Part shown: positions 4,173-60,439 of the stretch, piece after piece | Numbering within the stretch: position 1 is the stretch's first letter | Layout of the letters: every line of letters starts with the position of its first letter | DNA from: Macrostomum lignano | Lineage: Eukaryota | Assembly (NCBI GenBank): GCA_002269645.1 | Contig: NIVC01000043.1 | Coordinates: 62,001 to 126,000, forward strand | Direction: 5' to 3' | Length of the DNA: 64,000 nt | Program-made: the position numbers and the translations under genes | The notes under the pieces: generated by a model | Database searches by the model: none | Seen by the model: only the letters and a program-made list of their open reading frames with translations | What the model was told of the DNA's origin: nothing

Positions 4173-7100
4173 TCCGAAGAAGATGCCCAGCTAAAAGACG
4201 AGCTCAACATGCTAGTTGAGCGGCTTCAGGTGAGATGGCTGAATTAACTTTTGTCTCTCAAGCAGCAGTAAGGCAGTTCTGAGCACTCGTACACACGCTC
4301 ACACGGGGTGTACAGCCAGTGTCCCTGACTTCTAATCGTCAGGCATGTATACTCTGTGTGCCTTGGGGGTTGGCCACCATGTGTGTGATTCGCACTACAA
4401 CTCGCGGCTAAATGAATTTCGCCGCGAACAGACTCGAACCAGACGTTATGAAGGTGGGAAGTTCCCCTTACTTGAAATCCCAATAAATCAATTAAAATCA
4501 ATTGCCCAACAGGAGTCGGACTCCAACCTGTACAAGCCAGCTCTGGAGAGTCTGCGGAATTTAATCCGCTCATCAACAACTTCAATGATTTCGGCTCCTA
4601 AACCGTTGAAATTTCTTCGGCCGCATTACGAATCGTTGCGCAACGAAGTGTACGTAAAAATTCCCGACGGCCCTACTAAGCGACTGTGCGCCGACATTGT
4701 CTCCGTGCTGGCCATGACCGCCGTGGATAAGCCGGAGTTCCGCACCGATTCGCTGCGCTATCGATTCTTAGGCAGCGGCGAAGATGTCGGCGCCTGGGGC
4801 CACGAGTACGTCCGGCATCTCACTGGCCAGTGCGTGCTGGAATGGGAGGCCATGGCCGAGGCTGAACAACAGCAGATGCTTCGACAGCGTCGCCTGGAGC
4901 GTCGCCAGCAGCGACAACAGTCCGGTGCTGACAGCAAGAAAGACAACGACGACAACGACGAAGACAATGACGAAAGCGGCGACGAGGACGGCGAAGAACC
5001 CATGGAGGAGGACGGGCCAGCTGCCGGCGGAGTTCGGATTACTCGCGACCAACTGTTGTCACTGTGCGAGCTTATCATACCTTATCATATGAGCCACAAT
5101 GCCGAGTCTGAGGCCATCGATTTGTGCGTTGAAACTGGCCAATTGGCTATGCTTGAGAAGCATACTGGCCAGGTGAGATAAACTGCGGTGCTCTGTGTTT
5201 TTTGTAGGGCTGCTTTAGTTTATTGTTTGCTCAGATTAAGTTTGGTTTCCAATAGCAACCAGTCTAGTGTAGCATAGTAGCATTAATCTGGTTTCCAATA
5301 GCAACCAGTCTAGTGTAGTATAGTAGCATTAATCTGGTTTCCAATAGCAACCAGTCTAGTGTAGTATAGTAGCATTAATCTGGTTTCCAATAGCAACCAG
5401 TCTAGTGTAGTATAGTAGCATTAATCTGGTTTCCAATAGCAACCAGTCTAGTGTAGTATAGTAGCATTATTAATCTGGTTTCCAATAGCAACCAGTCTAG
5501 TGTAGTATAGTAGCATTAATCTGGTTTCCAACAGCAACCAGTCTAGTGTAGTATAGTAGCATTAATCTGGTTTCCAATAGCAACCAGTCTAGTGTAGTAT
5601 AGTAGCATTAATCTGGTTTCCAATAGCAACCAGTCTAGTGTAGTATAGTAGCATTAATCTGGTTTCCAATAGCAACTAGTCTAGTGTAGTATAGTAGCAT
5701 TAATCTGGTTTCCAATAGCAACCAGTCTAGTGTAGTATAGTAGCATTAATCTGGTTTCCAATAGCAACCAGTCTAGTGTAGTATAGTAGCATTAATCTGG
5801 TTTCCAACAGCAACCAGTCTAGTGTAGTATAGTAGCATTAATCTGGTTTCCAACAGCAACCAGTCTAGTGTAGTATAGTAGCATTAATCTGGTTTCCAAT
5901 AGCAACCAGTCTAGTGTAGTATAGTAGCATTAATCTGGTTTCAAATAGCAACCAGTCTAGTGTAGTATAGTAGCATTAATCTGGTTTCCAATAGCAACCA
6001 GTCTAGTGTAGTATAGTAGCATTAATCTGGTTTCCAATAGCAACCAGTCTAGTGTAGTATAGTAGCATTAATCTGGTTTCCAATAGCAACCAGTCTAGTG
6101 TAGTATAGTAGCATTAATCTGGTTTCCAATAGCAACCAGTCTAGTGTAGTATAGTAGCATTAATCTGGTTTCCAATAGCAACCAGTCTAGTGTAGTATAG
6201 TAGCATTAATCTGGTTTCCAATAGCAACCAGTCTAGTGTAGTATAGTAGCATTAATCTGGTTTCCAATAGCAACCAGTCTAGTGTAGTATAGTAGCATTA
6301 ATCTGGTTTCCAATAGCAACCAGTCTAGTGTAGTATAGTAGCATTAATCTGGTTTCCAATAGCAACCAGTCTAGTGTAGTATAGTAGCATTAATCTGGTT
6401 TCCAATAGCAACCAGTCTAGTGTAGTATAGTAGCATTAATCTGGTTTCCAATAGCAACCAGTCTAGTGTAGTATAGTAGCATTAATCTGGTTTCCAATAG
6501 CAACCAGTCTAGTGTAGTATAGTAGCATTAATCTGGTTTCCAATAGCAACCAGTCTAGTGTAGTATAGTAGCATTAATCTGGTTTTAATTAATCTGCAGA
6601 GTAAAATCAATATGGCCCCAGACACAGCGACTATTTGACGACTTGTACCGTGACATCTCGTCATTTTAGAGTCGTCTAGTAGAGACCTTGCCTATTTTAC
6701 CTGTGTTACCTGCAAAGACGAAGTGACTCTGAGGCGCTTCTTAGCCTAGCCTTCATCAGGATCGTATAACCCCCCTCTTCTCCCTCCCAAAGGCCAATTA
6801 CCAGCGAGTGTGCCTCTACCTGACCAGCTGCGTGCCCTACCTGCCAGACGAGGACTGGACAGCTGTGCTCGACACGGCCAGGCGAATCTACCTGAAATTC
6901 GGCGACCAAGGCAACGCAATGCGGTGCGCTTTGAAGTTGAACAGTCCCGAGCTGGTTTCCAAACAGTTCGCTGAGACGCCCGATCCTACAGTGCGCAAGC
7001 AGCTCGCCTGTCTGCTGGGCAGGCAGCAGTTCGCCGTTGACTGGGACGAAGACGCCTACGATGATGCGGAACTGCTCAGCGAGCTGATGGCCAATGCCAG

Positions 7101-10100
7101 GCTGAATGAGCATTTCCACGCATTGGGCCGGGAGCTCGATATTATGGAGCCTAAGGTATGGGGATGGCGTGCATGGCAATTCTGCCCAATCCTCTGACTC
7201 CAGAATCATAATAATAATTGATTACACCTGCCCCAATTGGGCCAGATGTGCAACCGACAGCTCAGCCGCAGCTATTGCGCGGCGCATCTGAAGGCTGCCG
7301 TACGGCTGGGGGGTCGCCACACACAGCCTCAATTACCCCAGCCAATGCTGGCACCCATTTCACAGCTGGGTTAACTGAAGCAATGCAGAGTTAAGCGTCT
7401 TGCACAAGGACACAAATTGTTCCAGTGGGATCGGGGATCGAACCCCCGACCACTAGGCTACAGGGGCAGAAGAGAAGAAAGAGATGCATAGCTAGGTAAA
7501 ATTACGTAAAAATAAATGCTCGCACAAGTACTGGTAGGATTGTGGGCACCCTGGCGCGCAACGTCTTCGGGGACATTGACTCCAGAGCACATTCATACAC
7601 TTGGGTGTGAATCGCGTAACTGATCGATCCACTTAATTGATGGAATTCATCAAACACTATTATTTAATTCTGCCGTGAAAAATTCAATATCCAGCTGCCG
7701 GAGGATATCTACAAGTCGCACCTGGAGCCCACTCGCATGAGCACTGGCACGGTGGATTCGGCTAGGCAGAATCTCGCCTCATCCTACGTTAATGGCCTAG
7801 TTAACTGCGGCTTTGGCCGGGACAAACTGCTGATGGAAGACGATAACAAAATGAAGTGGATCTATAGGAATAAGGATGCCGGCATGATGTCATCCGTGGC
7901 TACTCTTGGCTGGCTGCTACTGTGGGATGTGGACGGCGGTCTGGTACAGATTGACAAGTACCTGTATTTGCAGGTGAGTGACTCCTATCCAATATCAACC
8001 ATTTCCTATGCAATAGCATCTATTTATCCCATAGCAACCATCTATCCCATAGCAACCATCTATCTCATAGCAACTATCCCATAGCAACCATTTATCCTAT
8101 AGCAACTATGCCATAGCAACCCTCTATCCCATAGCAACCATGTATGCCATAACAACCATCTATCCCATAGCAACCATCTATCTCAGCAACTATCCCATAG
8201 CAACCATTTAATCCTATAGCAACTATGCCATAGAAACCATTTATCCTATAACAACGACGTCATAGCAACTATCTATCCCATAGCAACCATCTATCCCATA
8301 TAGCAACCGTCCATCCCATAGCAACCATCTATACCTTAGCAAGCATTTTCATTAGTTATTGAGTCCCTGATTCACTAAGCACCTTAATAGGCTATCACCC
8401 AACTCTCAACCATGGCAACCTAAAACCCTACTGCCAGGACGACAACATCAAAGCCGGCGCTCTGCTAGCCTGTGGCGTTGTTAACTCTGGCGTGCGCAAC
8501 GAATGCGAGCCGGCTCTGGCCCTGCTAGCCGACTACGTTGAGAATAAGACCTCCTGTCTGAACAAAGCCGCACTAATCGGCCTGGGAGTGGCTTATGCTG
8601 GCCGAGGCAGTGGCGGCGAATCGGCCATTGCTAAGCTGCAGCCGCTCATCACTGAGCAGGGCAAGCCTGAGCAGGCCGCCCTGGCCGCCCTGTCCTGCGG
8701 CGTGATCGCTGCCGGCACTCTGCACTCGGATGTGACGTCGAGCATTCTGCAGAGCCTGTTGGAGGCTCCGCCTGGCGACCGGGTGAAGCCGCTGGCTAGG
8801 CTGCACGCTCTCGGCTTGGCACTGTGCTGCTTAGGCAGGCAGGAAGCGGCCGAGCCGGTTCTAGCCGGCCTGGCAGCCGTAGAAGAGCCAGTCCGTTCCC
8901 TAGCTAGAGTCCTGTGCGAAGCATGCGCCTACGCCTGTACAGGCAATGTGCTCAAAGTGCAAAGCATGCTTCATCTGCTCAGCGAGAAGGCTCAAGAAGA
9001 AATTGGAGCTGGCGATGCCGGCAGTAGCAGCGGTGGCGGCGGCAGTCGGTCTACTTCTACAGCCAGTAGCGGCAGGCCTCTGGAGAACAACAGCGGCTCT
9101 CCGTCCGCCGCAGCTGCCGATAAAAAGTCGTCCGAAGAGGCCACAACAGCCTATGCTCAAGGCGCCGCCGTTCTGGGCGTCGCCCTGGTTGCTATGGGCG
9201 AAGATGTTGGCAAAGATATGGCTTTCCGAATTTTTGGAAATCTGCTGCGATTCGGCGAGGCCAATATTAAACGGGCTGTGCCGCTTGCGCTTGGCCTGGT
9301 TTATACCTCTAATCCGGAGCTTAAGGTGAGACTCTTGTCGGCTGGGTCTAACATGGTTCTGGTCCCAGATCCTCAGTTGCTGGGCCAGCCTCCCAGATCC
9401 TCAGTTGCTGGGCCAGCTTCTCAGATCCTTAGTTAGTGGGCCAGCCTCGCAGAGTGTTAGTTACTAGGCCTGCCTCCCACATCCTCAGTTGCTGTGCCAG
9501 TCAACTAACATTTTAATCTAGTTGAGTAGTTTTAAACTGAAACCATTTAAACTGAAACCCATTGCCAAACCCGCCAGGTGCTGGACCTGCTCAGCAAGTT
9601 CTCGCACGACTCCGACCTGGAAGTGGCCCTGTCCTCCATCCTGGCCATGGGCCTGTGCGGCGCCGGCACTAACAATGCCCGCCTGGCTGCTATGCTTCGT
9701 CAGCTGGCCGGCTATCACGCTAAAGATCCTCTAGCCCTGTTTGCTGTCCGCCTAGCCCAGGGCCTGACCCATCTGGGCAAGGGCACGCTAACGCTGACGC
9801 CCTCCCATTCGGACAAGTTTCTCAATAATCCTGGCGCTCTGGCTGGCCTATTGGCCGTGCTGGTTGCCGGGCTGGACATGCGCCGGCTGCTGCTGGCTAG
9901 CGGCTGGGACTGCCTGTTGTTCTATCTGACTCCGGCTATTCAGCCCCGCCTGCTGATGACTTTTGATGCCGATTTGCAGCCTATGCAGGTAATTTTATTA
10001 CTTCTTGTTTAGTTTGCTATTGAATGCATGTACAAAGATATTAAAATGACTAGGTGTCTCTCGAAAAAATGCGCCTATCTACTTTTTTCAGTAGTGAAAT

Positions 10101-11870
10101 TAGCGTTTTTCCTTTATTATAGTTAAAGTAATAAAATCTGTTAAATTTTTGCTGGCTATTTAAAGTTTTTAACCTGCAACAATCGCCTCTGGCTTTCTAC
10201 AAGCAGTCCTATTAGATTAGCATCTTCACCCTGTTTGAAGCTGCACCCAAATCCAGTGCGCGTGCATAGCGAGCAAGAGCGAAAAGAGGTGGCACCACAG
10301 CCCCAGCCAGGCCGAAAAACAGTTTTGGCTTTCCTCTTGCATGCCCAGCTAGACTGGGCCTGTCCCCTAGGCTGAGTATCGTCCGCCTGACTTTGACTTC
10401 TCTCCTTACTGCTCTCTCATTGGCTGGAGCTAGACTGGGCCTGTCCCCTAGGCTGAGTATCGTCCGTCTGACTTTGACTTCTCTCCTTACTGCTCTCATT
10501 GGCTGAGCTAGATTAGGCCTGTCTCCTAGGCTGAGTATCGTCTGACTTTGAATTCTCTCCTCACTGCTCTCATTGGCTGAGCTAGATTGGGCCTGTGTCC
10601 TAGGCTGAGTATCGTCTGACTTTGAATTCTCCCCTTACTGCTCTCATTGGCTGAGCTAGATTGGGCCTGTCTCCTAGGCTGAGTATCGTCTGACTTTGAC
10701 TTCTCTCCTTACTGCTCTCTCATTGGCTGAGCTAGATTAGGCCTGTCTCCTAGGCTGAGTATCGTCTGACTTTGAATTCTCTCCTTACTGCTCTCATTGG
10801 CTGAGCTAGATTGGGCCTGTCTCCTAGGCTGAGTATCGTCTGACTTTGACTTCTCTCCTTACTGCTCTCTCATTGGCTGAGCTAGATTAGGCCTGTCTCC
10901 TAGGCTGAGTTTCGTCTGACTTTGAATTCTCCCCTTACTGCTCTCATTGGCTGAGCTAGATTGGGCCTGTCTCCTAGGCTGAGTTTCGTCTGACTTTGAA
11001 TTCTCCCCTTACTGCTCTCATTGGCTGAGCTAGATTGGGCCTGTCTCCTAGGCGGAGTTTCGTCTGTCTTTGAATTCTCTCCTTACTGCTCTCATTGGCT
11101 GAGCTAGATTGGGCCTGTCTCCTAGGCTGAGTTTCGTCTGACTTTGACTTCTCTCCTTACTGCTCTCTCATTGGCTGAGCTAGATTGGGCCTGTCTCCTA
11201 GGCTGAGTTTCGTCTGACTTTGAATTCTCTCCTTACTGCTCTCATTGGCTGAGCTAGATTGGGCCTGTCTCCTAGGCGGAGTTTCGTCTGTCTTTGAATT
11301 CTCTCCTTACTGCTCTCTCATTGGCTGAGCTAGATTAGGCCTGTCTCCTAGGCTGAGTTTCGTCTGACTTTGACTTCTCTCCTTACTGCTCTCTCATTGG
11401 CTGAGCTAGATTAGGCCTGTCTCCTAGGCTGAGTTTCGTCTGACTTTGACTTCTCTCCTTACTGCTCTCTCATTGGCTGAGCTAGACTGGGCCTGTCCCC
11501 TAGGCTGAGTGCTAGTACGTTAGTATATCGCTAGCGTGGATTTTTCTCGACCGAATTTGTCTATGGCAAAACCCCATCCAGCGCTATGTGTTTTCTATCT
11601 AGAGCATACTCGGATGGTTATCGCGCGCATACACACACACACACACTTAAACAACAATTCCAGGTGCCTGTCCGAGTTGGCCAAGCTGTAGACACAGTTG
11701 GCCAGGCCGGCCGGCCCAAAACCATCACGGGATTCCAGACGCACACCACTCCAGTGCTGCTGGCCTACGGAGAGCGTGCCGAACTGGCCACCGAGGAGTA
11801 CGAGCCCGTCAGCAGCCTGCCGTTGGAGGGATTCGTCATTCTAAGGAAGAATCCTAATTACCAAGCCTAA
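4173..11870 (+). CDS. PSMD2: 26S proteasome non-ATPase regulatory subunit 2 (Rpn1)
   Basis: Exons 4173-4229, 4513-5172, 6793-7155, 7695-7973, 8438-9325, 9578-9988, 11664-11870, all phase 0 with GT-AG. Motifs [94 protein letters not shown]. No ATG-bearing first exon found in the window. Confidence 0.97.
4250..4480 (-). mobile_element. tRNA-headed SINE family B, copy 1 (Rpn1 intron 1)
   Basis: Minus strand has a B-box GGTTCGAGTC, then CCCAAGGCACACAGAGTATACATGCCTGACGATTAGAAGTCAGGGACACTGGCTGTACACCCCGTG, homologous to 31570-31730 and 58025-58190. Confidence 0.6.
5243..6585. repeat. 46-bp minisatellite, about 29 copies, Rpn1 intron 2
   Basis: Unit TAATCTGGTTTCCAATAGCAACCAGTCTAGTGTAGTATAGTAGCAT, near-identical copies. 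Confidence 0.97.
7230..7461 (-). mobile_element. CORE-like tRNA-derived SINE family A, copy 1 (internally deleted head)
   Basis: High identity to 59371-59651. Minus strand contains GTGTCCTTGTGCAAGACGCTTAACTCTGCATTGCTTCAGTTAACCCAGCTGTGAAATGGG, resembling the MIR/CORE domain. Confidence 0.75.
7988..8340. repeat. ~18-bp degenerate minisatellite (CCATAGCAACCATCTATC), Rpn1 intron 4
   Basis: Direct inspection; starts about 15 bp after the donor at 7974. Confidence 0.9.
9363..9500 (+). repeat. 28-bp minisatellite CCCAGATCCTCAGTTGCTGGGCCAGCCT, locus 1
   Basis: About 4-5 copies in Rpn1 intron 5; the same unit occurs at 12049-12125 and, reverse-complemented, at 39885-40310. Confidence 0.85.
10345..11510. 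repeat. ~74-bp minisatellite, Rpn1 intron 6
   Basis: Unit approx. CTAGGCTGAGTATCGTCTGACTTTGAATTCTCTCCTTACTGCTCTCATTGGCTGAGCTAGATTGGGCCTGTCTC, about 15 copies. Confidence 0.93.
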
Positions 11871-12048
11871 TATTTTGTTTTATATTTTGACTGATAATGC
11901 CGCTTGGGTGTGAAGCATAGTGTAGTTAAATTTTGCTGGTTTTGCTAGGACAAAATATTTAGATAATTAGCTTCGCATAAGTTTTAGTGACAATATTCGG
12001 TTTTCAAATTCCCGGCTGGTATTTAAAGTGAGATACGAACAGGGCCTA

Positions 12049-18140: not shown

Positions 18141-31316
<13,176 letters not shown>

Positions 31317-36914: not shown

Positions 36915-37895
36915 CAGACTTGTCTAGGGTCACCAAGGTGACCGTGCTGTGTGACAGTTTTGTCTATGGTCACCAAGGTGACCGTGCTGTGTGACAGTCT
37001 TGTCTATGGTCACCAAAGTGACCGTGCTGTGTGACAGTTTTGTCTAAAGTCACCAAGGTGACCGTGCTGTGTGACAGTCTTGTCTATGGTCACCAAGGTG
37101 ACCGTGCTGTGTGACAGTCTTGTCTATGGTCACCAAGGTGACCGTGCTGTGTGACAGTCTTGTCTATGGTCACCAAGGTGAACGTGCTGTGTGACAGTCT
37201 TGTCTAGGGTCACCAAGGTGAACGTGCTGTGTGACAGTCTTGTCTAGGGTCACCAAGGTGAACGTGCTGTGTGACAGTCTTGTCTATGGTCACCAAGGTG
37301 ACCGTGCTATGTGACAGTTTTGTCTATGGTCACCAAGATGACCGTGCTGTGTGACAGTCTTGTCTATGGTTACCAAGGTGACCGTGCTGTGTGATAGTCT
37401 TGTCTAGGGTCACCAAGGTGAACGTGCTGTGTGACAGTCTTGTCTAGGGTCACCAAAGTGACCGTGCTGTGTGACAGTCTTGTCTAAGGTCACCAAGGTG
37501 ACCGTGCTGTGTGACAGTTTTGTCTCTGGTCACCAAGGTGACCGTGCTGTGTGACAGTCTTGTCTATGGTCACCAAGGTGACCGTGCTGTGTGACAGTTT
37601 TGTCTATGGTCACCAAGGTGACCGTGCTGTGTGACAGTTTTGTCTATGGTCACCAAGGTGACCGTGCTGTGTGACAGTTTTGTCTATGGTCACCAAGGTG
37701 ACCGTGCTGTGTGACAGTCTTGTCTATGGTTACCAAGGTGACCGTGCTGTGTGACAGTTTTGTCTATGGTCACCAAGGTGACCGTGCTGTGTGACAGTCT
37801 TGTCTATGGTTACCAAGGTGACCGTGCTGTGTGACAGTTTTGTCTATGGTCACCAAGGTGAACGTGCTGTGTGACAGTTTTGTCTATGGTCACTA
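36915..37895. repeat. 40-bp double-hairpin minisatellite, about 24 copies
   Basis: Unit GGTCACCAAGGTGACCGTGCTGTGTGACAGTCTTGTCTAT; GGTCACC-AA-GGTGACC and GACA-GTCT-TGTC inverted repeats; no spacers. Confidence 0.96.
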
Positions 37896-38062
37896 AGGTC
37901 TAGGGCCACAAGACTAGAAATTAAAAAAACGAAACTGGTGAAAAAGCAATCAATTTCCTGATTAAAATCAGACGCAATAAAATATAGAGACAATAGTTTT
38001 GAAAGAGATATACTCATATTTATATTTAATTAACTCTCTGCGCTGACCAAAATTATAAACCG

Positions 38063-40806
38063 CTACTTTCGCTTCGATTTCTTGTCAGTCCGTCCGGCCG
38101 CCGCCCCAGGCTTGATAGCGGCGTGGCCGCTCTCCTTCAAATGCTTGAACAGCTGATTCTTAGAATCGAACCACTGCCTGCAGGTTTTGCACACTTGGGT
38201 GGTCCCGTCAGCCTCCTCTTCCAACTGTTCCTGACGTTTCTGTTCAAGCAGCTCCTGCTGCTTCTGCCGTTGGCGATCCTTCCGTCGGCGCGGCTTCTTT
38301 GAAGTTTCCGGCGTTGCTGCTGCCGCCGCTTCATCATCGGAAGCTTCCGCAGCATCTTCCGCTGGTTTTGCTGCCGCAGAATTTGCATTTGGATTATCTG
38401 ATGGTTCCTCATTTTCTCCTAGCTGAGCCTGTAGCTGCTGGCGCTGCTGTTGCTTTCTTTTGCTCTTCTTTTTCTTGCCGCCAGAGACCTGCTGGACTTC
38501 CGCTTCCAGCTGTACGTCTTCATCATTGTCTAAAGAGTCATTGTCTGCTGCTGCTGGATCTTTTTCTACTGGCTGGGCATCGTGCTTTGCTAACTCAAGT
38601 TTGAGCAGCTCGAGTCGCTCTCTGTGCCGCTTGGATCGATCGTGGCTCTGCTTGGCGCCTGGGGTGCGGAATGCCTGCGATGGTGAGGAGGGGTGGCTGG
38701 ATGCAGCGATGCAGAGGGCAGCGTTGCGTCATCAGAGAGTCAGAGAAAGTGGGACTGTCAGGGTCAGACAGAGTCGATTGATAGAGTCAGAAACAATCGA
38801 GGAAGAGTCAGAGCTGATTAAGAAAGAGTCAGAGCTGATCGAGAAAGAGTCAGAGCTGATCAAGAAAGAGTCAGAGCTGATCGAGAAAGAGTCAGAGCTG
38901 ATTGAGAAAGAGTCAGAGCTGATCGAGAAAGAGTTAGAGCTGATCGAGAAAGAGTCAGAGCTGATTGAGAAAGAGTCAGAGCTGATCAAGAAAGAGTCAG
39001 AGCTGATTGAGAAAGAGTCAGAGCTGATCGAGAAAGAGTCAGAGCTGATTGAGAAAGAGTCAGAGCTGATTGAGAAAGAGTCAGAGCTGATCAAGAAAGA
39101 GTCAGAGCTGATCGAGAAAGAGTCAGAGCTGATCGAGAAAGAGTTAGAGCTGATCAAGAAAGAGTCAGAGCTGATCGAGAAAGTCATTAGCCATAAGGAA
39201 AACTTCAGACTGAGCTCACCTTCTCGCAAACAACGCACACCAGCGCATCCTCAGCATCATCCTCATCCGCTTCCTCAGCTTCATCACACTCGGCAGCACC
39301 TACAGCTCCATTGATCACCCCAGCGCCTTCTTCGCCGCCATCTTCCTGATCCTCCCAGTCTCCGTCATCGTCTAGATCGGAGGCGCCGGCCCCGTGCTCG
39401 GCTTCGATCTTGGCCAGCTCGGCCTCGAGGTCGTCAGTCCTGGCCCAGTCGGGCGCCCTGTACCGGCTGGCGGTCTCCAGGTGGGCCTTCCTAGCCGCCG
39501 AGGCCATCGCTTTCGCTTTGGCTTCGACTTCGCGCGCGCGCGCCTCTAATCGGCGCCGTTCGGCGCGCACCCGAGGATCGCGCTTTTTAACGAAAGCAAC
39601 CAGAGTTCGAATCTCTTCGTTGCGCTCTCGACGGGCGGCGTCTCTGGCTGCGCGATTCTCCTTCTCCATGGCCTTCCTGGCGTACTTGTTTGGCGCCTCC
39701 CTGGTGTCGTATTTCTCCACCCACACGTAGGACTTGCGCGTGAAGAAGGTCTCCCAGTGCGCGTAGAACGGCCTGACCACCGTGTCGTATGGGGAGTCGG
39801 AGCGGCCAAACTCTGTGCGGAATGGCAGGGGAGTTGAATGCGATAATAGTGCGATTCCTAGCTAATCCCATGCTGCATGGACTTGGGGGTGCGGCAACTG
39901 TGGATCTGGGAGGCTGGCCCAGCAGCTGAGGATCTGGGAGGCTGGTGGCCCAGCAACTGAGGATCTGGGAGGCTGGCCCAGCAACTGTGGATCTGGGAGG
40001 CTGGCCCAGCAGCTGAGGATCTGGGAAGCTGGCCCAGCAACTGTGGATCTGGGAGGCTGGCCCAGCAACTGTGGATCTGGGAGGCTGGCCCAGCAACTGA
40101 GGATCTGGGAGGCTGGTCCAGCAACTGAGGATCTGGGAGGCTGGCCCAGCAACTGAGGATCTGGGAGGCTGGTGACCCAGCAACTGAGGATCTGGGAGGC
40201 TGGCCCAGCAGCTGAGGATCTGGGAGGCTGGCCCAGCAGCTGAGGATCTGGAGGCTGGCCCAGCAACTGAGGATCTGGGAGGCTGGCCCAGCAGCTGAGG
40301 ATCTGGAAGGTCAACGGTGACACCTGGTTAGCCATCAACAGCCTCCAACCTGGAAAGTCAGGCGGCGGTTCGTCGTCTCCGTCGCAGGCCCGCCGCTCCT
40401 CCTCGGCCAGATCGCTGAACACCCGGGCGTACACAGTGAAGTAGCCTTCCTCGCCGTCGTCGTAGTCGTCGTAGCAGGCGGAGGTGAAGAATTGGAAGAC
40501 GTCCAGACGCTCCTCCTGATAGGCGTCGCCGCGGCCGAGGCCGCCTTTCAAGATCCGCTCGCGGTGCTTGTCGTACCAGGCCCGCTCCTGCGGGTCGGAC
40601 AGAGTCTCGTAGGCCTTCTGCACCAGTCGGAAGTGGGCGGTGGCCTCCTCCACCCTGTCCGGGTTCTTGTCCGGATGCCAGCGAAGCGCCAGCCGCCTGT
40701 AGGCCTTCTTCAGCTCATCGTCGGTGGCCTGGCGCTCCACCTCCAGCAGTTCGTAGTAGCAGCGGACTCCGCCGGCTCTCTGGTGCTGCTGTTCGACTGA
40801 GGTCAT
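38063..40806 (-). CDS. DNAJC21: DnaJ homolog subfamily C member 21 (Jjj1 orthologue), about 553 aa
   Basis: Exons 40806-40350, 39812-39220, 38674-38063 (phase 1, phase 0). J-domain with RWHPDKN, FYAHW..F..RKSY, NEEIRTLVAFVKKRDPRV, C2H2 fingers CVVCEKAFRTPGAKQSHDRSKRH and CKTCRQWFDSKNQLFKHLKESGH. Confidence 0.95.
38790..39185. repeat. 21-bp minisatellite (AGAGTCAGAGCTGATCGAGAA), DNAJC21 intron 2
   Basis: Direct inspection; source of the ESELIEK pseudo-ORF. Confidence 0.95.
39885..40310 (-). repeat. 28-bp minisatellite CCCAGATCCTCAGTTGCTGGGCCAGCCT, locus 3 (DNAJC21 intron 1)
   Basis: Same unit as 9363-9500, read on the minus strand; about 15 copies. Confidence 0.93.
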
Positions 40807-40859
40807 CGAGGCCGCTGCCGCATGCAGTACAGTGCGTTGAGATATGAAGATAATCCATA

Positions 40860-41005
40860 ATTCAGCTTCCTTCATCAAGCTACCAACTCAAACCTTCCTA
40901 AGACTTCCGAATCTAACCTTCAGCTTCCTTCATCAGGCTACCGACTCTAACCTTCAGCTTCCTTCATCAGGCTACCGACTCTAACCTTCAGCTTCCTCCA
41001 TCAGG
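40860..41005. repeat. 34-bp tandem repeat, about 4 copies, upstream of DNAJC21
   Basis: Unit ACCTTCAGCTTCCTTCATCAGGCTACCGACTCTA. Confidence 0.85.
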
Positions 41006-41215
41006 TTAAACCAGACAAATCGCAGGCAAAAAACAAGCGCCAAAATATAGTACACAAATTTTAATCATATTTTTCAGGAAAATATATTTAAAATTCAACG
41101 GGTCTGTAAGAGAAATCCATGGCATAAAACATTCTTAATCAGCACTAAATCATTGAACTATATGTAGTTCGGAATATATACCAGAATTAAAAATGCACAA
41201 TAGTTGTATCTCAAA

Positions 41216-43544
41216 TCAACAAGTCCCAATGGGTAGCTCAGCCTCCCTAGCCTCATCAGCTTCCTCATCAGCCGTTTGCTGTCCGTAAGCAAATCTCCTA
41301 GCCAACTGTAGCAGCCTGGCTCTAAACTGAGCATCTGTTGCTATCAGAGATGCCCACGTGGCCGAATCCATAGCGTTCATATCGCGCATAGCGTCTACGG
41401 TGAGCTCGGCTAGACGAGTGCGCTTCTCGGGCGGCATCGAGCGAATGGCGTCAGCCAGCGACACGAAGCCGCCTCGGTTAGCAACAGCGTAGGCTACGGC
41501 GGCGCACGCAGCGCCAAGCGCCAGGCCGAAATTGCAGACGCGAGGCAGCAACGCGCCGCCTAGCAGAGCGCCGCCTCCGACGGCTAAACCGGCCAAAACC
41601 GACCGGCTAACTGACGCTTGTAAAACCTCCTCCTCCGCTAAGCCGGTAATTAGTTGGGAGGCCGCCTGCACTCGCCAGTTGAACACTCGGGGATCCCAGG
41701 CTTTGACAAAGGCGAGCAATACGCGAAGCTCTTCACAGCGGCGATGCTGCTGCTGCTGCTGACTGCTCAGCTGAGTCAGGCTGGCCTCCCAGGCGGAGTA
41801 GAACGCGGCCACTACCGACTTGTAGTCGGAGTTCGATTTGCCGAATTCTGTGGGATTAGGGCCAGGGATATCGCAAATGTTTTGGGATAAAACTTAGAGA
41901 TTTGTTAAAAGGATTTTAGGGACTAGGAACTCGTAAAGAATCGGGACTAGGAACTCTTAAAGAATCGGGACTAGGAACCCTTAAAGAATCGGGACTAGGA
42001 ACCATCATAGAATCGGGACTAGGAACTCTTATAGAATCGGGACTAGGAACCATCATAGAATCGGGACCAGGAACTCTTATAGAATCGGGACTAGGAACTC
42101 TTATAGAATCGGGACTAGGAACCATCATAGAATCGGGACTAGGAACTCTTATAGAATCGGGACTAGGAACTCTTATAGAATCGGGACCAGGAACTCTTAT
42201 AGAATCGGGAACCAGGAACTTTTATAGAATCGGGACCAGGAACTCTTATAGAATCGGGACCAGGAACTCTTATAGAATCGGGACCAGGAACTCTTATAGA
42301 ATCGGGACCAGGAACTCTTATAGAATCGGGACCAGGAACTCTTATAGAATCGGGACCAGGAACTCTTATAGAATCGGTACTAGGAACTCTTATAGAATCG
42401 GGACTAGGAACTCTTATAGAATCGGGACTAGGAACTCTTATAGAATCGGGACTAGGAACTCTTATAGAATCGGTACTAGGAACTCTTATAGAATCGGGAC
42501 TAGGAACTCTTATAGAATCGGGACTAGGAACTCTTATAGAATCGGTACTAGGAACTCTTATAGAATCGGGACCAGGAACTCTTATAGAATCGGGACTAGG
42601 AACCATCATAGAATCGGGACCAGGAACTCTTATAGAATCGGGACTAGGAACCATCATAGAATCGGGACTAGGAACTCTTATAGAATCGGGACTAGGAACT
42701 CTTATAGAATAGGGACCAGGAACTATCATAGAATCGGGACTAGGAACTCTTATAGAATCGGGACTAGGAACTCTTATAGAATCGGGACTAGGAACTCTTA
42801 TAGAATCGGGACCAGGAACTCTTATAGAATCGGGACCAGGAACTCTTATAGAATCGGGACTAGGAACCATCATAGAATCGGGACCAGGAACTCTTATAGA
42901 ATCGGTACTAGGAACTCTTATAGAATCGGGACCAGGAACTCTTATAGAATCGGGACTAGGAACTATTACAGAATCGGGACTAGGAACTCTTATATAATCG
43001 GGACTAGAAACTATTACAGAATCGGGATAAGGACTATCATAGAATCGGGACTAGGAACTATTGTAGAATCGGGACTAGAAACTATCACAGAATCGGGACT
43101 CTGAATCTCACCAGGCACAGTCAAATGCAATTCGTCGGCCAACTTGTCAAACAGTCGGCCATAGACATCAAAGAAGCCGCCCGGGCCGTCGCCATAGTCG
43201 CTATAGCAACCAGGTGGGAAGTAGTTAAATAGGTTAGTAGAATCGGTATGAGGCTCCCAATTGGTGTCGCGCTGACGCAATATGGCCTCTCTGTGCTTAT
43301 CATACAGAGCTCTGGTGCGAGGATCTCCCAATATCTCATAGGCTCGTTGAATCTGTCGAAACTGATCAGTAGTATCCTCAGTAGTAGTACCGTTGGCATC
43401 GGCTCGATTCCGTTGCTTATCCGGATGCCATCGCAGGGCCTGACGGTGATAAGCTGTACGAATCTCAGCTTGACTAGCCTGACGATCCACCTGCAGAAGA
43501 TCGTAGAAGCAGCGAACAGAGCTGTCTGCCTCTTTCGATGCCAT
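41216..43544 (-). CDS. Chimeric DNAJC21-derived J-domain protein fused to a C19orf12/Nazo-like domain, about 354 aa
   Basis: Exons 43544-43112 and 41847-41216 join in phase 1 (CCT G/gtgaga..ccacag/AA TTC), the same position and phase as DNAJC21 intron 1. J-domain RWHPDKQ; PEFGKSNSDYKSVVAAFYSAWE and EELRVLLAFVKAWDPRV are DNAJC21-like; LAEEEVLQASVSRS..GGGALLGG..GGFVSLADAIRSMPPEKR is C19orf12-like. Confidence 0.85.
41905..43105. repeat. 24-bp minisatellite (TAGAATCGGGACTAGGAACTCTTA) filling the fusion-gene intron
   Basis: About 50 copies; source of the SPDSIRVP pseudo-ORFs. Confidence 0.96.
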
Positions 43545-43846
43545 TATCAAATTCAATAATAGTAGAGTTTTCTGAAATTAGATTTTTTCGGGTAAACGGC
43601 CGGAGAAATTTAAGCCTCGCCAGCTAATAAGCGGTTGAAAAATTATCGACAAAAATGAGACAATTAAACCAATTAATTATTAAATGCAGCAGCCAGAAAA
43701 AAACAGAATTTTGTTTGCTTTTGATGACGCAATTAATTTGTGTTTATTAGTATTAGAGTAAGGTTTTATAAACATTAATACAGCATAGCATAGTACAGAA
43801 TTGCATGTACAATTTACGAAGTCAAGTCATGTCAAGTAAAAAACTG

Positions 43847-46800
43847 TCAGTCGTCGGCAGGCTCCTCTGACGCCGGCGGCGGTGTCGGCACGGGCGACTG
43901 ACGCGCTGGCGGCGTCGGCGGCAGTTCGTCGTTGTCGTCGGAAGCTTCCGCAGCTTCCGCAGTTTCCACCTGTGCAGCTTCCGGTTCGGTTGACTTCTCA
44001 GTCTGCGGCAAAGGCCGCTCAGCCTCGGCTTTCGATACGGCCGTCTCTAAATCGGCGATTTCCCGCTCTAATTCGTAGTTCTTCATCACCAGGTGCACCC
44101 AGGTGTCTTCGAGGGTGTGCAACCGCTCGCCAGCTTGCACCTTGAATTAATTAATTAGATAAATTAAAGGAAAGCTAGGGTGCAATAAATAGATGGATTG
44201 TTGTGCTACACTTAATCACACCAGATGCTACACTCAATTACACTAGATATTACATTCAATTACACTAGATATTACATTCAATTACACTAGATATTACATT
44301 CAATTACACTAGATATTACATTCAATTACACTAGATATTACATTCAATTACACTAGATAGTACATTCAATTACACTAGATATTACATTCAATTACACTAG
44401 ATATTACATTCAATTACACTAGATATTACATTCAATTACACTAGATAGTACATTCAATTACACTAGATATTACATTCAATTACACTAGATATTACATTCA
44501 ATTACACTAGATAGTACATTCAATTACACTAGATATTACATTCAATTACACTAGATATTACATTCAATTACACTAGATATTACATTCAATTACACTAGAT
44601 AGTACATTCAATTACACTAGATATTACATTCAATTACACTAGATAGTACATTCAATTACACTAGATATTACATTCAATTACACTAGATAGTACATTCAAT
44701 TACACTAGATATTACATTCAATTACACTAGATATTACATTCAATTACACTAGATATTACATTCAATTACACTAGATATTACATTCAATTACACTAGATAT
44801 TACATTCAATTACACTAGATAGTACATTCAATTACACTAGATATTACATTCAATTACACTAGATATTACATTCAATTACACTAGATAGTACATTCAATTA
44901 CACTAGATAGTACATTCAATTACACTAGATTTTACATTCAATTACACTAGATATTACATTCAATTACACTAGATATTACATTCAATTACACTAGATATTA
45001 CATTCAATTACACTAGATATTACATTCAATTACACTAGATATTACATTCAATTACACTAGATAGTACATTCAATTACACTAGATAGTACATTCAATTACA
45101 CTAGATATTACATTCAATTACACTAGATTTTACATTCAATTACACTAGATTTTACATTCAATTACACTAGATAGTACATTCAATTACACTAGATAGTACA
45201 TTCAATTACACTAGATTTTACATTCAATTACACTAGATTTTACATTCAATTACACTAGATTTTACATTCAATTACACTAGATTTTACATTCAATTACACT
45301 AGATATTACATTCAATTACACTAAATTTTACATTCAATTACACTAGATATTACATTCAATTACACTAGATTTTACATTCAATTACACTAGATTTTACATT
45401 CAATTACACTAGATTTTACATTCAATTACACTAGATTTTACATTCAATTACACTAGATATTACATTCAATTACACTAGATATTACATTCAATTACACTAG
45501 ATATTACATTTAATTACACTAGATATTACATTCAATTACACTAGATATTACATTCAATTACACTAGATATTACATTCAATTACACTAGATAGTACATTCA
45601 ATTACACTAGATAGTACATTCAATTACACTAGATAGTACATTCAATTACACTAGATAGTACATTCAATTACACTAGATATTACATTCAATTACACTAGAT
45701 ATTACATTCAATTACACTAGATATTACATTCAATTACACTAGATATTACATTCAATTACACTAGATATTACATTCAATTACACTAGATATTACATTCAAT
45801 TACACTAGATTTTACATTCAATTACACTAGATATTACATTCAATTACACTAGATAGTACATTCAATTACACTAGATTTTACATTCAATTACACTAGATTT
45901 TACATTCAATTACACTAGATAGTACATTCAATTACACTAGATAGTACATTCAATTACACTAGATTTTACATTCAATTACACTAGATTTTACATTCAATTA
46001 CACTAGATTTTACATTCAATTACACTAGATTTTACATTCAATTACACTAGATATTACATTCAATTACACTAGATTTTACATTCAATTACACTAGATATTA
46101 CATTCAATTACACTAGATAGTACATTCAATTACACTAGATATTACATTCAATTACACTAGATAGTACATTCAATTACACTAGATAGTACATTCAATTACA
46201 CTAGATATTACATTCAATTACACTAGATTTTACATTCAATTACACTAGATATTACATTCAATTACACTAGATAGTACATTCAATTACACTAGATATTACA
46301 TTCAATTACACTAGATATTACATTCAATTACACTAGATATTACATTCAATTACACTAGATATTACATTCAATTACACTAGATAGTACATTCAATTACACT
46401 AGATATTACATTCAATTACACTAGATATTACATTCAATTACACTAGATATTACATTCAATTACACTAGATAGTACATTCAATTACACTAGATAGTACATT
46501 CAATTACACTAGATAGTACATTCAATTACACTAGATAGTACATTCAATTACACTAGATAGTACATTCAATTACACTAGATAGTACATTCAATTACACTAG
46601 ATTTTACATTCAATTACACTAGATATTACATTCAATTACACTAGATAGTACATTCAATTACACTAGATATTACATTCAATTACACTAGATATTACATTCA
46701 ATTACACTAGATATTACATTCAATTACACTAGATATTACATTCAATTACACTAGATAGTACATTCAATTACACTAGATATTACATTCAATTACACTAGAT

Positions 46801-47621
46801 ATTACATTCAATTACACTAGATATTACATTCAATTACACTAGATAGTACATTCAATTACACTAGATAGTACATTCAATTACACTAGATAGTACATTCAAT
46901 TACACTAGATAGTACATTCAATTACACTAGATAGTACATTCAATTACACTAGATAGTACATTCAATTACACTAGATTTTACATTCAATTACACTAGATTT
47001 TACATTCAATTACACTAGATTTTACATTCAATTACACAAGATGCTACCAAGGACGACTTAAGTAGAATGTCCTCCTACTTAAGTCGTCCTGGATGCTACG
47101 CATGCGGCACGCACCTGCTCAGTCTTCCGCTGCAAATTAACCTCCTTCACTGCTTTCCGAGTCGCCTGCAGACGCCGTTCAGTCTCAGCAACCATGCGCA
47201 CCAGAGTGTCGTTGTGACAGCGCCAAGCATCGGATCCGTGAGCCAGCAGCAGTTGCAGATTCTCAATGCGGACACTCTGGTGCTCCAGCTGGGCTCGACT
47301 GTTGTCAACTGAGTCTCGCCAGCTCTGCACATCGGTCAGGCGGCCAGTTGGCGGGGCTGGCAGTTCGTATCGCTTCATGCTCATGTGCTCAGGCGGCTGT
47401 CGACTGCTTAAACGTTCAAATTCGGCCCGCAATATATCGGTCTCAAACTGATGAAGATTCAATGGCGGCAGGTGTTCCAAATAGTTTTTAGTTGGCCGGT
47501 AGCGTCGCATCTCCTCTTCAACCATGCCGAGGGCGGCCTCTCTGACGCCGGCCTCGTCGAAGCCTCGGTCAACGTAAGGAAGAGCGTTGACCAAAGCGGC
47601 CTGTTGTTCCAGTGCAGACAT
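43847..47621 (-). CDS. BCAS2: Pre-mRNA splicing factor SPF27/BCAS2, about 266 aa
   Basis: Exons 47621-47115 and 44140-43847 (phase 0). ALPYVD, LVEEE-like MVEEEMRRYRPTKNYL, MSMKRYELPAPP, NSRAQLEHQSVRIENL, LEDTWVHLVMKNYELE. Confidence 0.95.
44225..47035. repeat. 22-bp AT-rich minisatellite (TACACTAGAT(AT/AG/TT)TACATTCAAT), about 128 copies, BCAS2 intron
   Basis: Direct inspection; variation is confined to one dinucleotide. Confidence 0.98.
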
Positions 47622-47669
47622 GCCTAAATTTGCTCAGTGGGCACGAATAGTCAGAGTTCAATACACTCA

Positions 47670-49847: not shown

Positions 49848-51808
49848 CTAGCACGCACATCTGCCGCCGCCGATTTCATCGTCCTCATCTGCGTTACCAC
49901 GCCGCGGCTTGTTCTTCGCGCCGCTAACCGCCCCCAGCCGGACAATGGCCGGATCGTCGGTCAGTGAGACTGTCTGAGCCGCCGACTCAGAGTTGGCAGT
50001 CTTGGCTAGCACCGATTCAATTAGAAATCGCATCGCCTCCTCAATCATGACGCCCTCCTTGGCGCTGACCTCTGTCCAACCAATGAAGCCGTTCTCTCTG
50101 CAGAATGTCTCAATTTCGGACAGTTGCAGCTGCCGCTCGCCGCTCAACAAGTCGCATTTATTGGCCAGCAGGATGGCCGGTAGCGGGCTGCCATCGGGCA
50201 GGGCGCATTTGCTGTCCAAATCGCGTTTCCATTTCAGCGCACCGTCAAATGTTGAGCGTTTGGTTAAGTCAAATACGATTACGGCTGCGTGGGCGTCTCT
50301 GTAGTACACTCGCGTCATGGAGGTGAACCTGCAGGGGTGGGGGGTTGACTGACTGCCTGTGTCTTTCTCTGTGTCTCAGTCAGTCAGTCAGTGGGTCAGT
50401 CAGTGGGTCAGTCAGTGGGTCAGTCAGTCAGTCAGTCACCCACTCACTCAAGTCAGTCAGTCAGTGGGTCAGTCAGTCAGTCAGTCAGTGGGTCAGTCAG
50501 TCAGTCAGTCAGTGGGTCAGTCAGTGGGTCAGTCAGTGGGTCAGTCAGTGGGTCAGTCAGTCAGTCACCCACTCACTCAAGTCAGTCAGTCAGTGGGTCA
50601 GTCAGTGGGTCAGTCAGTCAGTCAGTCAGTCAGTGGGTCAGTCAGTGGGTCAGTCAGTCAGTGGGTCAGTCAGTCAGTGGGTCAGTCAGTGGGTCAGTCA
50701 GTCAGTCAGTCAGTCAGTCAGTCAGTCAGTCAGTCAGTCAGTCAGTCAGTCAGTCAGTCAGTCAGTCAGTCAGTCAGTCAGTCAGTCAGTCAGTCAGTCA
50801 GTCAGTCAGTCAGTCAGTCAGTCAGTCAGTCAGTCAGTCAGTCAGTCAGTCAGTCAGTCAGTCAGTCAGTCAGTCAGTCAGTCAGTCAGTCAGTCAGTCA
50901 GTCAGTCAGTCAGTCAGTCAGTCAGTCAGTCAGTCAGTCAGTCAGTCAGTCAGTCAGTCAGTCAGTCAGTCAGTGGGTAAGTGGGCCAGTCAGTCAGTGG
51001 GTCAGTCAGTCAGTCAGTCAGTCAGTCAGTCAGTCAGTCAGTCAGTGGGTCAGTCAGTCAGTCAGTCAGTCACCCACTCACTCAAGTCAGTCAGTCAGTG
51101 GGTCAGTCAGTGGGTCAGTCAGTCAGTCAGTCAGTCAGTCAGTCAGTCACCCACTCACTCAAGTCAGTCAGTCAGTCAGTGGGTCAGTCAGTCAGTGGGT
51201 AAGTGGGTCAGTCAGTCAGTCAGTGGGTCAGTCAGTCAGTGGGTCAGTGGGTCAGTGGGTCAGTCAGTCAGTCAGTCAGTCAGTCAGTCAGTCAGTCAGT
51301 CAGTCAGTCAGTCAGTCAGTCAGTCAGTCAGTGGGTAAGTGGGCCAGTCAGTCAGTGGGTCAGTCAGTGGGTCAGTCAGTGGGTCAGTCAGTCAGTGGGT
51401 CAGTCAGTGGGTCAGTCAGTGGGTCAGTCAGTCAGTCAGTCAGTCAGTCAGTCAGTCAGTCAGTCAGTCAGTCAGTCACCCACTCACTCAAGTCAGTCAG
51501 TCAGTGGGTCAGTCTGTGGGTCAGTCAGTGGGTCAGTCAGTGGGTCAGTCAGTCAGTCAGTCAGTCAGTCAGTCAGTCAGTCAGTCAGTCAGTCAGTCAG
51601 CCAGTGCTCACCTCTCCTGCCCGGCAATGTCCCACATCTGCAGTTTAATAGTTTGAGTGTCAGACCAGCGAATAACTTTAAGCGCAAAGTCCACCCCGAT
51701 GGTCTGCTTATAGTCAGTCTGAAACATGTTATTCACATATCGATGAACGAACGAAGTTTTACCAACTGTTGGATCGCCAATTACTAATATTTTCATTAGT
51801 TGCTCCAT
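49848..51808 (-). CDS. RAB29: Rab32/38/29-subfamily GTPase, closest to Rab29 (Rab7L1), 225 aa
   Basis: Exons 51808-51612 and 50328-49848 (phase 2). GDPTVGKT, IGVDFALKV, the subfamily-diagnostic WDIAGQE, then RFTSMTRVYYRDA (Rab29-like rather than Rab32 FGNMTR), WKRDLDSK, NKCD, C-terminal CAC prenylation motif. Confidence 0.85.
50375..51600. repeat. (CAGT)n microsatellite with GGGT variants, Rab intron
   Basis: Direct inspection. Confidence 0.98.
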
Positions 51809-56944: not shown

Positions 56945-59225
<2,281 letters not shown>

Positions 59226-59370
59226 CTGCGGGCGGGATTAGAAAGTGAGAATTTCAAAACAAGGATCAAAAGAAAAGTCTTTGTTCTTGATGCCTTATAT
59301 CTGAGTCTAAGTTTAGTTCTTACAGATTTTAAGAGGATTTAGAAGTCTTAGCTTTGGATTCTGTTTTAGA

Positions 59371-60019: not shown

Positions 60020-60439
60020 TCAAGACGGCTTCAGCATGAGACCAAGCTGTTCAGTGGCAAACGCACTCAGCTGGGTAAGCATCTGAGTTCGCAGATCCAT
60101 ATTGCCAGCCAGCATAGTAGCCAGCATAACCGCATCAGTAATGTCAAAACCGCGCAATAAATCCATTGTAGAGTCCACCAAATCGTTGCGTTTTTCTTGC
60201 GGCAATCGAAGCAGCACCGTAGCCAGCGGTTCGAATTGGCCCGACGTGGCCCAGGCGCCCGCCAGGCCACCAACGGCGCCGCCGACGGCTACACCGACTG
60301 GGCCACCGAGAAGTCCGCCGACAAAGGCGCCACCTCCGGCGATTGCAGCACCTTTAGCGGACTGCTTCACGGTGACTCGAATGCCTTCCTCCTCGGATAG
60401 CTTCACTAGCAGGTCGAAGACTTTTACCGGATCTAGCAT
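60020..60439 (-). CDS. C19orf12: C19orf12 / Nazo family glycine-zipper protein, 139 aa
   Basis: Single coding exon. [67 protein letters not shown] closely parallels human C19orf12 ([48 protein letters not shown]). Confidence 0.93.
   Translation of the reverse strand: [139 protein letters not shown]

Follow-up and report, generated by a model that had tools for sequence, protein, structure and literature searches.

J-domains dock on Hsp70 through their HPD motif and trigger ATP hydrolysis, and the module that targets the J-domain differs between J-proteins. Class C J-proteins are defined by the attachment of their J-domain, which decides where Hsp70 works. In DNAJC21 and yeast Jjj1, class C proteins of cytoplasmic 60S maturation, an N-terminal J-domain with an HPD motif is combined with a zuotin homology domain (ZHD), a charged middle region, and two C2H2 zinc fingers. 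Other J-proteins with a cytosolic J-domain are anchored in membranes: DNAJB12/DNAJB14 and yeast Hlj1 carry ordinary transmembrane or tail anchors. C19orf12 (Nazo in Drosophila; Pfam PF20721), a protein whose molecular function is unsettled, causes the human neurodegeneration MPAN (mitochondrial membrane protein-associated neurodegeneration). Here, we analyzed a 64,000-nucleotide stretch of the genome of the flatworm Macrostomum lignano (GCA_002269645.1, contig NIVC01000043.1, positions 62,001 to 126,000; "the window"), in which a minus-strand gene at positions 41216 to 43544, hereafter called the fusion, joins a DNAJC21-derived J-domain to a C19orf12-like domain. As far as our searches reach, a C19orf12-type domain as the attachment of a J-domain appears to be undescribed.

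C19orf12 has been modeled as a glycine-zipper hairpin whose termini are both cytosolic (PMC12384588). It has been located at the endoplasmic reticulum (ER), the mitochondrial outer membrane, their contact sites, and lipid droplets, with data from the human and fly proteins only (PMC12384588, PMC10883546). The family members found in this study are stand-alone proteins of about 140 amino acids (aa), whereas the corresponding domain of the fusion forms the C-terminal half of a 354-aa protein. It shares with C19orf12 and Nazo the N-terminal LxEEE helix, what appears to be the glycine-zipper hairpin, and a helical C-terminal part with MPxEKR and D..D motifs. With DNAJC21, represented here by the adjacent gene, the fusion has in common the N-terminal HPD-bearing J-domain, the site and phase of the first intron, and the flanks of the ZHD; it lacks a 27-aa ZHD core, the charged middle region, and both C2H2 fingers, and has a membrane-type domain instead. 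By its sequence, the fusion is a DNAJC21 paralogue by descent that fails two defining features of that family, a complete ZHD and the zinc fingers. Its proposed logic, in which a J-domain at an organelle surface would concentrate Hsp70 activity, is that of the membrane-anchored J-proteins with a cytosolic J-domain; the anchors of DNAJB12/DNAJB14 and Hlj1 are unrelated in sequence, whereas the anchor of the fusion would be a whole C19orf12-type domain with its own biology. A further parallel is the DNAJB1-PRKACA chimera (PDB 4wb7, among our PDB matches), in which a J-domain first exon likewise sits on an unrelated downstream gene to give an expressed chimera. That chimera is somatic, arises in a human tumor by deletion, and is joined to a kinase through an intron. 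The fusion, in contrast, is a fixed germline gene that was duplicated along with the genome, and its two parts are joined within exon 2.

A two-exon gene combines a J-domain with a C19orf12-like domain

The original prediction, made from the letters alone, described a J-domain exon that splices in phase 1 across a minisatellite intron to a second exon, giving about 354 aa with an intact HPD. Exon coordinates, phase, intron, product length, and HPD were all reproduced (Table 1), and the peptides it quoted were correct: joined in phase 1, the two exons form a stop-free open reading frame (ORF) of 354 aa. The exon 1 donor CCTG/GTGAGA (GT at 43111-43110) agrees with the M. lignano donor consensus GT[G/A]AG, as read from PMC8629364, and the exon 2 acceptor CCCACAG/AATTCGG (AG at 41849-41848) is conserved in all three genomic copies of the locus considered below. 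Frame, splice sites, and HPD are intact in each of the three, with introns of 1264, 1302, and 611 nt.

The match of the N-terminal half to Pfam DnaJ covers profile positions 2 to 63 of 63 and scores 70.8 bits, against a cut-off of 27.8. The HPD (His-Pro-Asp), located between helices II and III, lies in the motif LRWHPDK (codons at 43427-43419) and is followed, after HPDK, by a 7-residue insertion relative to DNAJC21. Foldseek against PDB and a PDB sequence search returned J-domains only, the latter down to E 3.9e-12; C19orf12 relatives with a solved structure were absent from the matches of both searches.

The C-terminal half was identified as C19orf12-like by two sensitive comparisons. Profile-profile alignment with hhalign against 27 canonical C19orf12 proteins gave a match of 99.35% (E 6.2e-21, 129 columns), and aa 203-334 of the fusion align with residues 3 to 131 of the 139-aa C19orf12 encoded at 60020-60439. 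An exhaustive phmmer search of 1.84e9 representative sequences retrieved 28 stand-alone C19orf12 proteins of 137 to 160 aa that match the same stretch, the best at E 1.5e-10. Judged by these E values (1.5e-10 by phmmer and 6e-21 by profile-profile comparison), a chance resemblance to C19orf12 is excluded. Glycines G33, G44, and G48 are invariant across the alignment including the fusion, and the hairpin reaches a Kyte-Doolittle maximum of 1.85, compared to 1.71 in the canonical copy. In an AF2 model of the fusion, helices span residues 229-244 and 249-267 with short strands flanking them (mean pLDDT, 62). Word-indexed protein searches, run with the exon 2 product and with a 28-sequence C19orf12 alignment, gave almost no matches; here, glycine-rich low-complexity words swamped the candidates. 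One of the phmmer matches (P0013, 285 aa) is made up of two C19orf12 domains in tandem, showing that domain duplication involves this family elsewhere as well. A 3256-aa protein with eight weak matches (P0019) was discarded as unrelated, Pfam finding neither a C19orf12 nor a DnaJ domain in it.

Table 1. Coordinates of the fusion gene, its parts, and other features of the window
Feature	Position	Strand	Description
Exon 1, coding part	43112..43544	-	433 nt, ATG at 43544; aa 1-144 and first base of codon 145; J-domain and start of ZHD remnant
Intron	41848..43111	-	Phase 1, 1264 nt; nearly all 24-bp minisatellite (41919-43100, 49 copies; TRF)
Exon 2	41216..41847	-	632 nt; aa 145-354 and stop codon, stop ends at 41216
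Probable spliced-leader trans-splice acceptor	43572..43573	-	TTTCAG/A; mature mRNA would start at 43571
5' leader	43545..43571	-	27 nt, open, in frame with the ORF; spliced-leader ATG would add MKTLLLLNLI
J-domain	43299..43508	-	aa 13-82; Pfam DnaJ PF00226, 70.8 bits, E 1e-19
ZHD remnant	41684..41845	-	aa 146-199; earlier part, from aa ~120, in exon 1
C19orf12-like domain	41279..41674	-	aa 203-334, full family length
Hydrophobic segment, putative glycine/small-residue zipper hairpin	41477..41602	-	aa 227-268, SVLAGLAVGGGALLGGALLPRVCNFGLALGAACAAVAYAVAN; 3-residue insertion at turn
BCAS2/SPF27, upstream neighbor	43847..47633	-	Pfam BCAS2, E 1.4e-57; last exon is ORF 43847-44140
Canonical DNAJC21 (parent 1)	38063..40806	-	3 exons (40806-40350, 39812-39220, 38674-38063), 553 aa; Pfam DnaJ, ZHD, two C2H2
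Canonical C19orf12 (parent type)	60020..60439	-	Single 139-aa ORF, 16.5 kb upstream, same strand; Pfam PF20721, 114.2 bits, E 6.9e-33
Minisatellite, 40 bp x22.5	37000-37899		
Minisatellite, 21 bp x18.5	DNAJC21 intron 2		
Minisatellite, 28 bp x14.7	DNAJC21 intron 1		
Minisatellite, 22 bp x129	44207-47042		BCAS2 intron
Proteasome RPN1/PSMD2-like gene			Pfam-confirmed
M1-family aminopeptidase			Pfam-confirmed
Ras-family GTPase			Pfam-confirmed
Other gene region	4336-11900	+	
Other gene region	22789-27934	+	
Other gene region	49851-50375	-	
Other gene region	56945-59237	-	

RNA-derived gene models of two sister loci contain the same exon junction

The best database match to the 354-aa product was the GenBank protein PAA57946.1 (94% identity over 100% of the query; DnaJ its sole recorded domain), in whose 90% cluster a second near-identical copy, PAA53278.1 (g7), was found. 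GenBank has listed the two since 2017 under the name "hypothetical protein" BOX15_Mlig015190g4/g7; DnaJ is the only domain recognized in them, and their two-exon model is that of the gene in the window. The proteins begin KTLLLLNLIMAS and KSLLLLNLIMAS and are flagged partial; the exact protein of the window was absent from the protein collection searched. The corresponding loci, here termed L001 and L002, lie on contigs of assembly Mlig_3_7 and align to the window over their entire length. All three share the gene order NDUFB10, Ras-family GTPase, BCAS2/SPF27, fusion, DNAJC21, and the unique segments around the fusion are 96 to 100% identical between the window and these loci, with fusion exon 1 as the exception (93%). 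The window thus holds a third copy, allelic or homeologous, in a genome that carries large duplications (PMC5730564, PMC8629364).

The Mlig_3_7 annotation was built from RNA-seq alone, by StringTie/TACO genome-guided assembly and a de novo transcriptome, with gene ends set by mapped spliced-leader and poly(A) reads and ORFs called by TransDecoder (PMC5730564). Because it derives only from RNA-seq, the two-exon model is a transcript model and not an ab initio guess, and it documents the sister copies; the exon junction proposed in the original prediction is in this way borne out at both of them. Two UniProt entries, A0A1I8FLB6 (P0008; 626 aa) and A0A1I8F438 (P0009; 1008 aa), were also considered as cDNA evidence for the junction and rejected as mis-merged, frame-shifted predictions from an older assembly. 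They merge SPF27, the fusion, and DNAJC21 with frame-shifted stretches, and would mislead searches by domain architecture.

The layout of exon 2 itself ties the two halves together. It has no in-frame ATG upstream of the C19orf12-like domain, the first being at aa 282, past the hairpin. A stand-alone exon 2 protein produced by spliced-leader addition at the exon 2 acceptor was considered and rejected, as that frame stops after 12 codons. Since exon 2 has no usable start and a spliced leader there runs into a stop, the C19orf12-like domain is translatable only as part of the fusion. Taken together, we are highly confident that the fusion gene is real and expressed.

At the 5' end, the sequence TAATTTCAG/AAAACTC (AG at 43573-43572) fits the M. 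lignano trans-splice acceptor motif [T/C]TNCAG (PMC8629364), and the GenBank coding sequence (CDS) of sister locus L002 begins at the base directly after the equivalent CAG. The M. lignano spliced leader ends in ...TTGCATG, i.e., in an ATG (PMC8629364). L001 (9990-10030) has, in place of the CAG acceptor, an ATG encoded in the genome that coincides exactly with the position of the spliced-leader ATG (tttATGaaaactc), so that this copy has no AG acceptor and an upstream start of its own. The BCAS2 stop lies 273 nt before the probable trans-splice site of the fusion, whose own stop is followed after 410 nt by the ATG of DNAJC21, all on one strand. Since both gaps fall within the 1-kb spacing used for operon calling in M. 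lignano (PMC8629364), BCAS2/SPF27, the fusion, and DNAJC21 (38063-47633, minus strand, head to tail) may be cotranscribed as a spliced-leader operon.

The two halves probably descend from DNAJC21 and C19orf12 of the same lineage

The DNAJC21 adjacent to the fusion is a canonical family member (57% identical to amphioxus DNAJC21). Its exon 1 ends in ...TTTCCAG/GT at 40350 and its exon 2 begins at 39812; this first intron, also a minisatellite, occupies the identical P/E site in phase 1 (DFP/EFGRSDSPY in DNAJC21, TVP/EFGKSNSDY in the fusion), as had been noted before. BLASTP aligned the fusion to this neighbor over aa 10-199 (40% identity, E 6e-46), with homology ending at AFVKAWDPRV. Within the ZHD remnant, 27 residues (YVWVEKYDTREAPNKYARKAMEKENRA) are missing, which agrees with the internal deletion described originally; in a multiple alignment, it is this block that flatworm and amphioxus DNAJC21 conserve best, and the residues flanking the gap are replaced by a poly-Q stretch. 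Accordingly, the ZHD profile PF21884 (ZUO1-like_ZHD) scores 54.4 bits in the parent and 16.9 in the fusion, incomplete (profile positions 2-44 of 105) and below the cut-off of 25.1. The loss of both zinc fingers was likewise reproduced, Pfam finding none in the fusion and two C2H2 fingers in the adjacent DNAJC21 (aa 344-368 and 503-541). In exon 2, the DNAJC21-type homology gives way to the C19orf12-type one within about 4 residues (DPRV-FNW-RVQ).

By residue comparison, both halves are nearest to their M. lignano parents, as expected for the proposed chimera of a tandem DNAJC21 duplicate and a C19orf12 copy. In a three-way comparison, 21 residues were common only to the fusion and M. lignano DNAJC21, against 12 common only to the fusion and amphioxus DNAJC21. 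Private changes numbered 39 in the fusion and 12 in M. lignano DNAJC21, which puts the rate of change in the DNAJC21 half at about three times that of its parent. Support for a tandem DNAJC21 duplicate as the putative 5' parent comes from the position next to DNAJC21, from the intron common to both in site and phase, and from homology that continues across the junction into exon 2. For the C19orf12 half, exclusive identities averaged 20.6 with the local copy and 14.6 with an outgroup, and the local copy was the closer one in 25 of 25 comparisons, with outgroups that had been picked for similarity to the fusion. Because the fusion is closer to the local copy than to every outgroup, the comparison speaks for a duplicate of the worm's own C19orf12, made within the lineage, as the likely 3' parent.

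From this we propose that a tandem duplicate of DNAJC21 would have retained exon 1, the ancestral intron with its phase 1, and the beginning of exon 2. The conserved ZHD core would have been lost along with everything downstream, both zinc fingers among it. Inside exon 2, the duplicate would have been joined in frame to nearly the whole CDS, from residue 3 onward, of a duplicated copy of C19orf12, an intronless gene. As the canonical C19orf12 CDS is a single ORF and the junction falls inside an exon, a deletion or insertion at the DNA level would be the simplest route. Microhomology between DNAJC21 ...DPRV and the C19orf12 N terminus MLDPVKVF was considered as a cause of the join; its spacing misfits and gives no support. 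The locus provides a clean example of new-gene formation, with parental intron and phase kept, an exon-internal junction, both parents nearby, and one half evolving about three times faster.

The fusion is under purifying selection and was found only in M. lignano

The window copy and L001 differ by 16 synonymous and 20 non-synonymous substitutions in the fusion (dS 0.066, dN 0.026, omega 0.39), and the synonymous changes exceed the neutral expectation (binomial p=0.006). These results showed that the fusion is under purifying selection. For the C19orf12-like half, long-term constraint can be argued from an open frame and family-invariant residues that are kept at about 30% identity. Thus, of the earlier proposal that the gene is "old and maintained," maintenance stands, with three intact copies and a dN/dS of ~0.39; old age was not shown, as no orthologue from another species was retrieved in the protein collections. 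Nor can divergence alone date the fusion, because the C19orf12 family itself evolves fast: mean pairwise identity is 34% among canonical members and 32% between the fusion and its local parent.

Exon 2 matched 31 proteins; within this set, a J-domain occurred in M. lignano models of this same locus and in no others. Full-text literature searches with the gene identifier and with the domain combination returned no description of either. The claim of novelty therefore has to be divided: the gene itself has been in the databases, unnamed, since 2017, whereas its architecture appears to be undescribed. We conclude that the fusion is a real, expressed, apparently lineage-restricted chimeric gene of M. 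lignano.

Exon 1 forms an island of divergence. Between the window (43112-43544) and both GenBank copies (L001 and L002, 10028-10460), 31 of 433 sites (7%) differ, 14 of the differences being synonymous and 17 non-synonymous (dS 0.16). Around it, divergence is 0 to 2% in the BCAS2 exon, the intergenic DNA, exon 2 of the fusion, and the exons of DNAJC21, and up to 3.9% in the 3' flank relative to L001. Synonymous changes were distributed unequally between exons 1 and 2 (Fisher's test, p=4e-5), and no such island was seen between L001 and L002. The island has the look of a patch introduced by gene conversion from some more distant copy, with the minisatellite intron as its boundary; a donor was not found.

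A hairpin-anchored J-protein is the favored function

Concerning function, we infer membrane insertion, topology, Hsp70 recruitment, and clients from the domains, and on this basis the fusion is probably a membrane-tethered Hsp70 co-chaperone, as originally suggested. The specific model that we favor, with moderate confidence, is that of a hairpin-anchored class C J-protein that would recruit cytosolic Hsp70 to C19orf12-type membranes. The C19orf12-like glycine-zipper hairpin would insert into a cytosol-facing organelle membrane, leaving both protein ends cytosolic. The N-terminal J-domain could then, via its HPD, recruit cytosolic Hsp70 and stimulate its ATPase at the membrane surface, and the zipper may pair with canonical C19orf12 in mixed oligomers. 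With the conserved core of the ZHD deleted and the zinc fingers missing, the parental role in 60S ribosome maturation was probably given up.

Several observations weigh against this picture or limit it. The Pfam profile PF20721 does match the C-terminal half (aa 204-322, profile positions 19-129 of 163, E 1.9e-4), at 21.7 bits and hence below its gathering cut-off of 30, so that the predicted C19orf12 match is significant by hhalign and exhaustive phmmer but not by Pfam. In the hairpin, several glycines are changed to Ala, Cys, or Pro: the family-invariant G46 is replaced and the conserved G57 is now alanine. Three residues are inserted at the turn, and the AF2 model has a pLDDT below 50 there in the hairpin. 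The hairpin topology is disputed even for C19orf12 itself (PMC12384588). Transcript evidence concerns the sister copies and not the exact copy in the window. The omega of 0.39 rests on 36 substitutions, almost all in exon 1, and the C19orf12-like part differs at just 4 to 5 sites between copies, too few for a test of recent constraint. Finally, searches of protein collections, whose coverage of flatworms is uncertain, found the fusion in one species only, M. lignano; as even RNA-seq-derived M. lignano copies failed to turn up in collections, absence elsewhere is weak evidence.

The locus could instead be a transcribed but functionless or decaying young chimera, an accident of duplication and deletion in a repeat-rich, polyploid genome whose frame is open only because it is recent. 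Occurrence in M. lignano only, the threefold excess of private changes over DNAJC21 (39 versus 12), the deleted ZHD core, the subthreshold Pfam C19orf12 score, and an omega that does not amount to strong constraint are all compatible with such a fate. Yet the halves are only 32 to 40% identical to their parents, while the 354-codon frame, the splice sites, the HPD, and the invariant glycines survive in three copies; divergence of this extent without any disablement is unexpected for neutral sequence, and the synonymous excess is significant (p=0.006). We regard a functionless chimera as unlikely. An annotation artifact is a far more remote prospect. If the exons belonged to separate transcripts, of a J-only gene and a C19orf12-like gene, assembly software might have joined them over the repetitive intron, where short reads map poorly, and the older UniProt models A0A1I8FLB6 and A0A1I8F438 are indeed plainly mis-merged with their neighbors. 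However, canonical splice sites are conserved in three copies despite introns of 611 to 1302 nt, the phase is preserved in an intron homologous to DNAJC21 intron 1, and exon 2 has no usable start codon and continues the DNAJC21 homology over the junction.

Two further alternatives keep the gene functional and change what it does. The remaining ZHD segments might still dock on 60S, like those of DNAJC21/Jjj1 and zuotin, and the protein would then hold ribosomes or pre-60S particles, and Hsp70 with them, at an organelle membrane. The ZHD is kept and alignable at either end (GFFDVYGRLF...EFGKS..FYSAWE and ELRVLLAFVKAWDPRV) and Pfam retains a weak match, but with the most conserved 27-residue block deleted, its neighbors replaced by poly-Q, the ZHD score down from 54.4 to 16.9 bits, and both zinc fingers absent, a ribosome link seems very unlikely. 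Alternatively, the J-domain could reside in the ER lumen and work with BiP, provided that translation starts at the spliced-leader AUG and adds the signal-peptide-like MKTLLLLNLI. The spliced leader does end in an ATG (PMC8629364) that shares the frame of the ORF, the added peptide is hydrophobic (Kyte-Doolittle up to 2.6 in a 9-residue window), and L001 has a genomic ATG at exactly that position. On the other hand, a leader that stays open over 9 codons is no rarity by chance, the hydrophobic stretch is short, with an Asn breaking it, and there is no sign that the spliced-leader AUG is used; moreover, DNAJC21 is cytosolic/nuclear and the C19orf12 termini are modeled as cytosolic (PMC12384588). 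A lumenal J-domain is, if anything, slightly less credible still than the ribosome-linked variant.

The selected union of a C19orf12-type domain with an Hsp70-recruiting module gives an inexpensive, testable hint at the partners of C19orf12. In a Rosetta-stone reading, which we put forward as a long shot, C19orf12-family proteins might generally work with Hsp70, or as its clients or adaptors, at ER-mitochondria or lipid-droplet surfaces; if true, this would give the orphan protein behind MPAN a directly testable molecular partner. Mutation of Hspa8 in rats has been reported to give neuroaxonal dystrophy (PMC10880117), and so has loss of the mouse C19orf12 homologue (PMC12619510); the shared phenotype is a loose lead toward a C19orf12-Hsp70 link. 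M. lignano has working transgenesis and RNA interference (PMC5730564, PMC11075559).

Other features of the window

The four other regions listed in Table 1 take in the three Pfam-confirmed genes and, lying between the GTPase cluster and C19orf12, two long ORFs of 367 and 232 aa on the minus strand that had no Pfam match. Every intron or spacer examined in 37000-47042 is filled by a different minisatellite (Table 1), and copy numbers vary between the genome copies. The spacer repeat at 40861-41008, for instance, is expanded by ~2.8 kb in L001.

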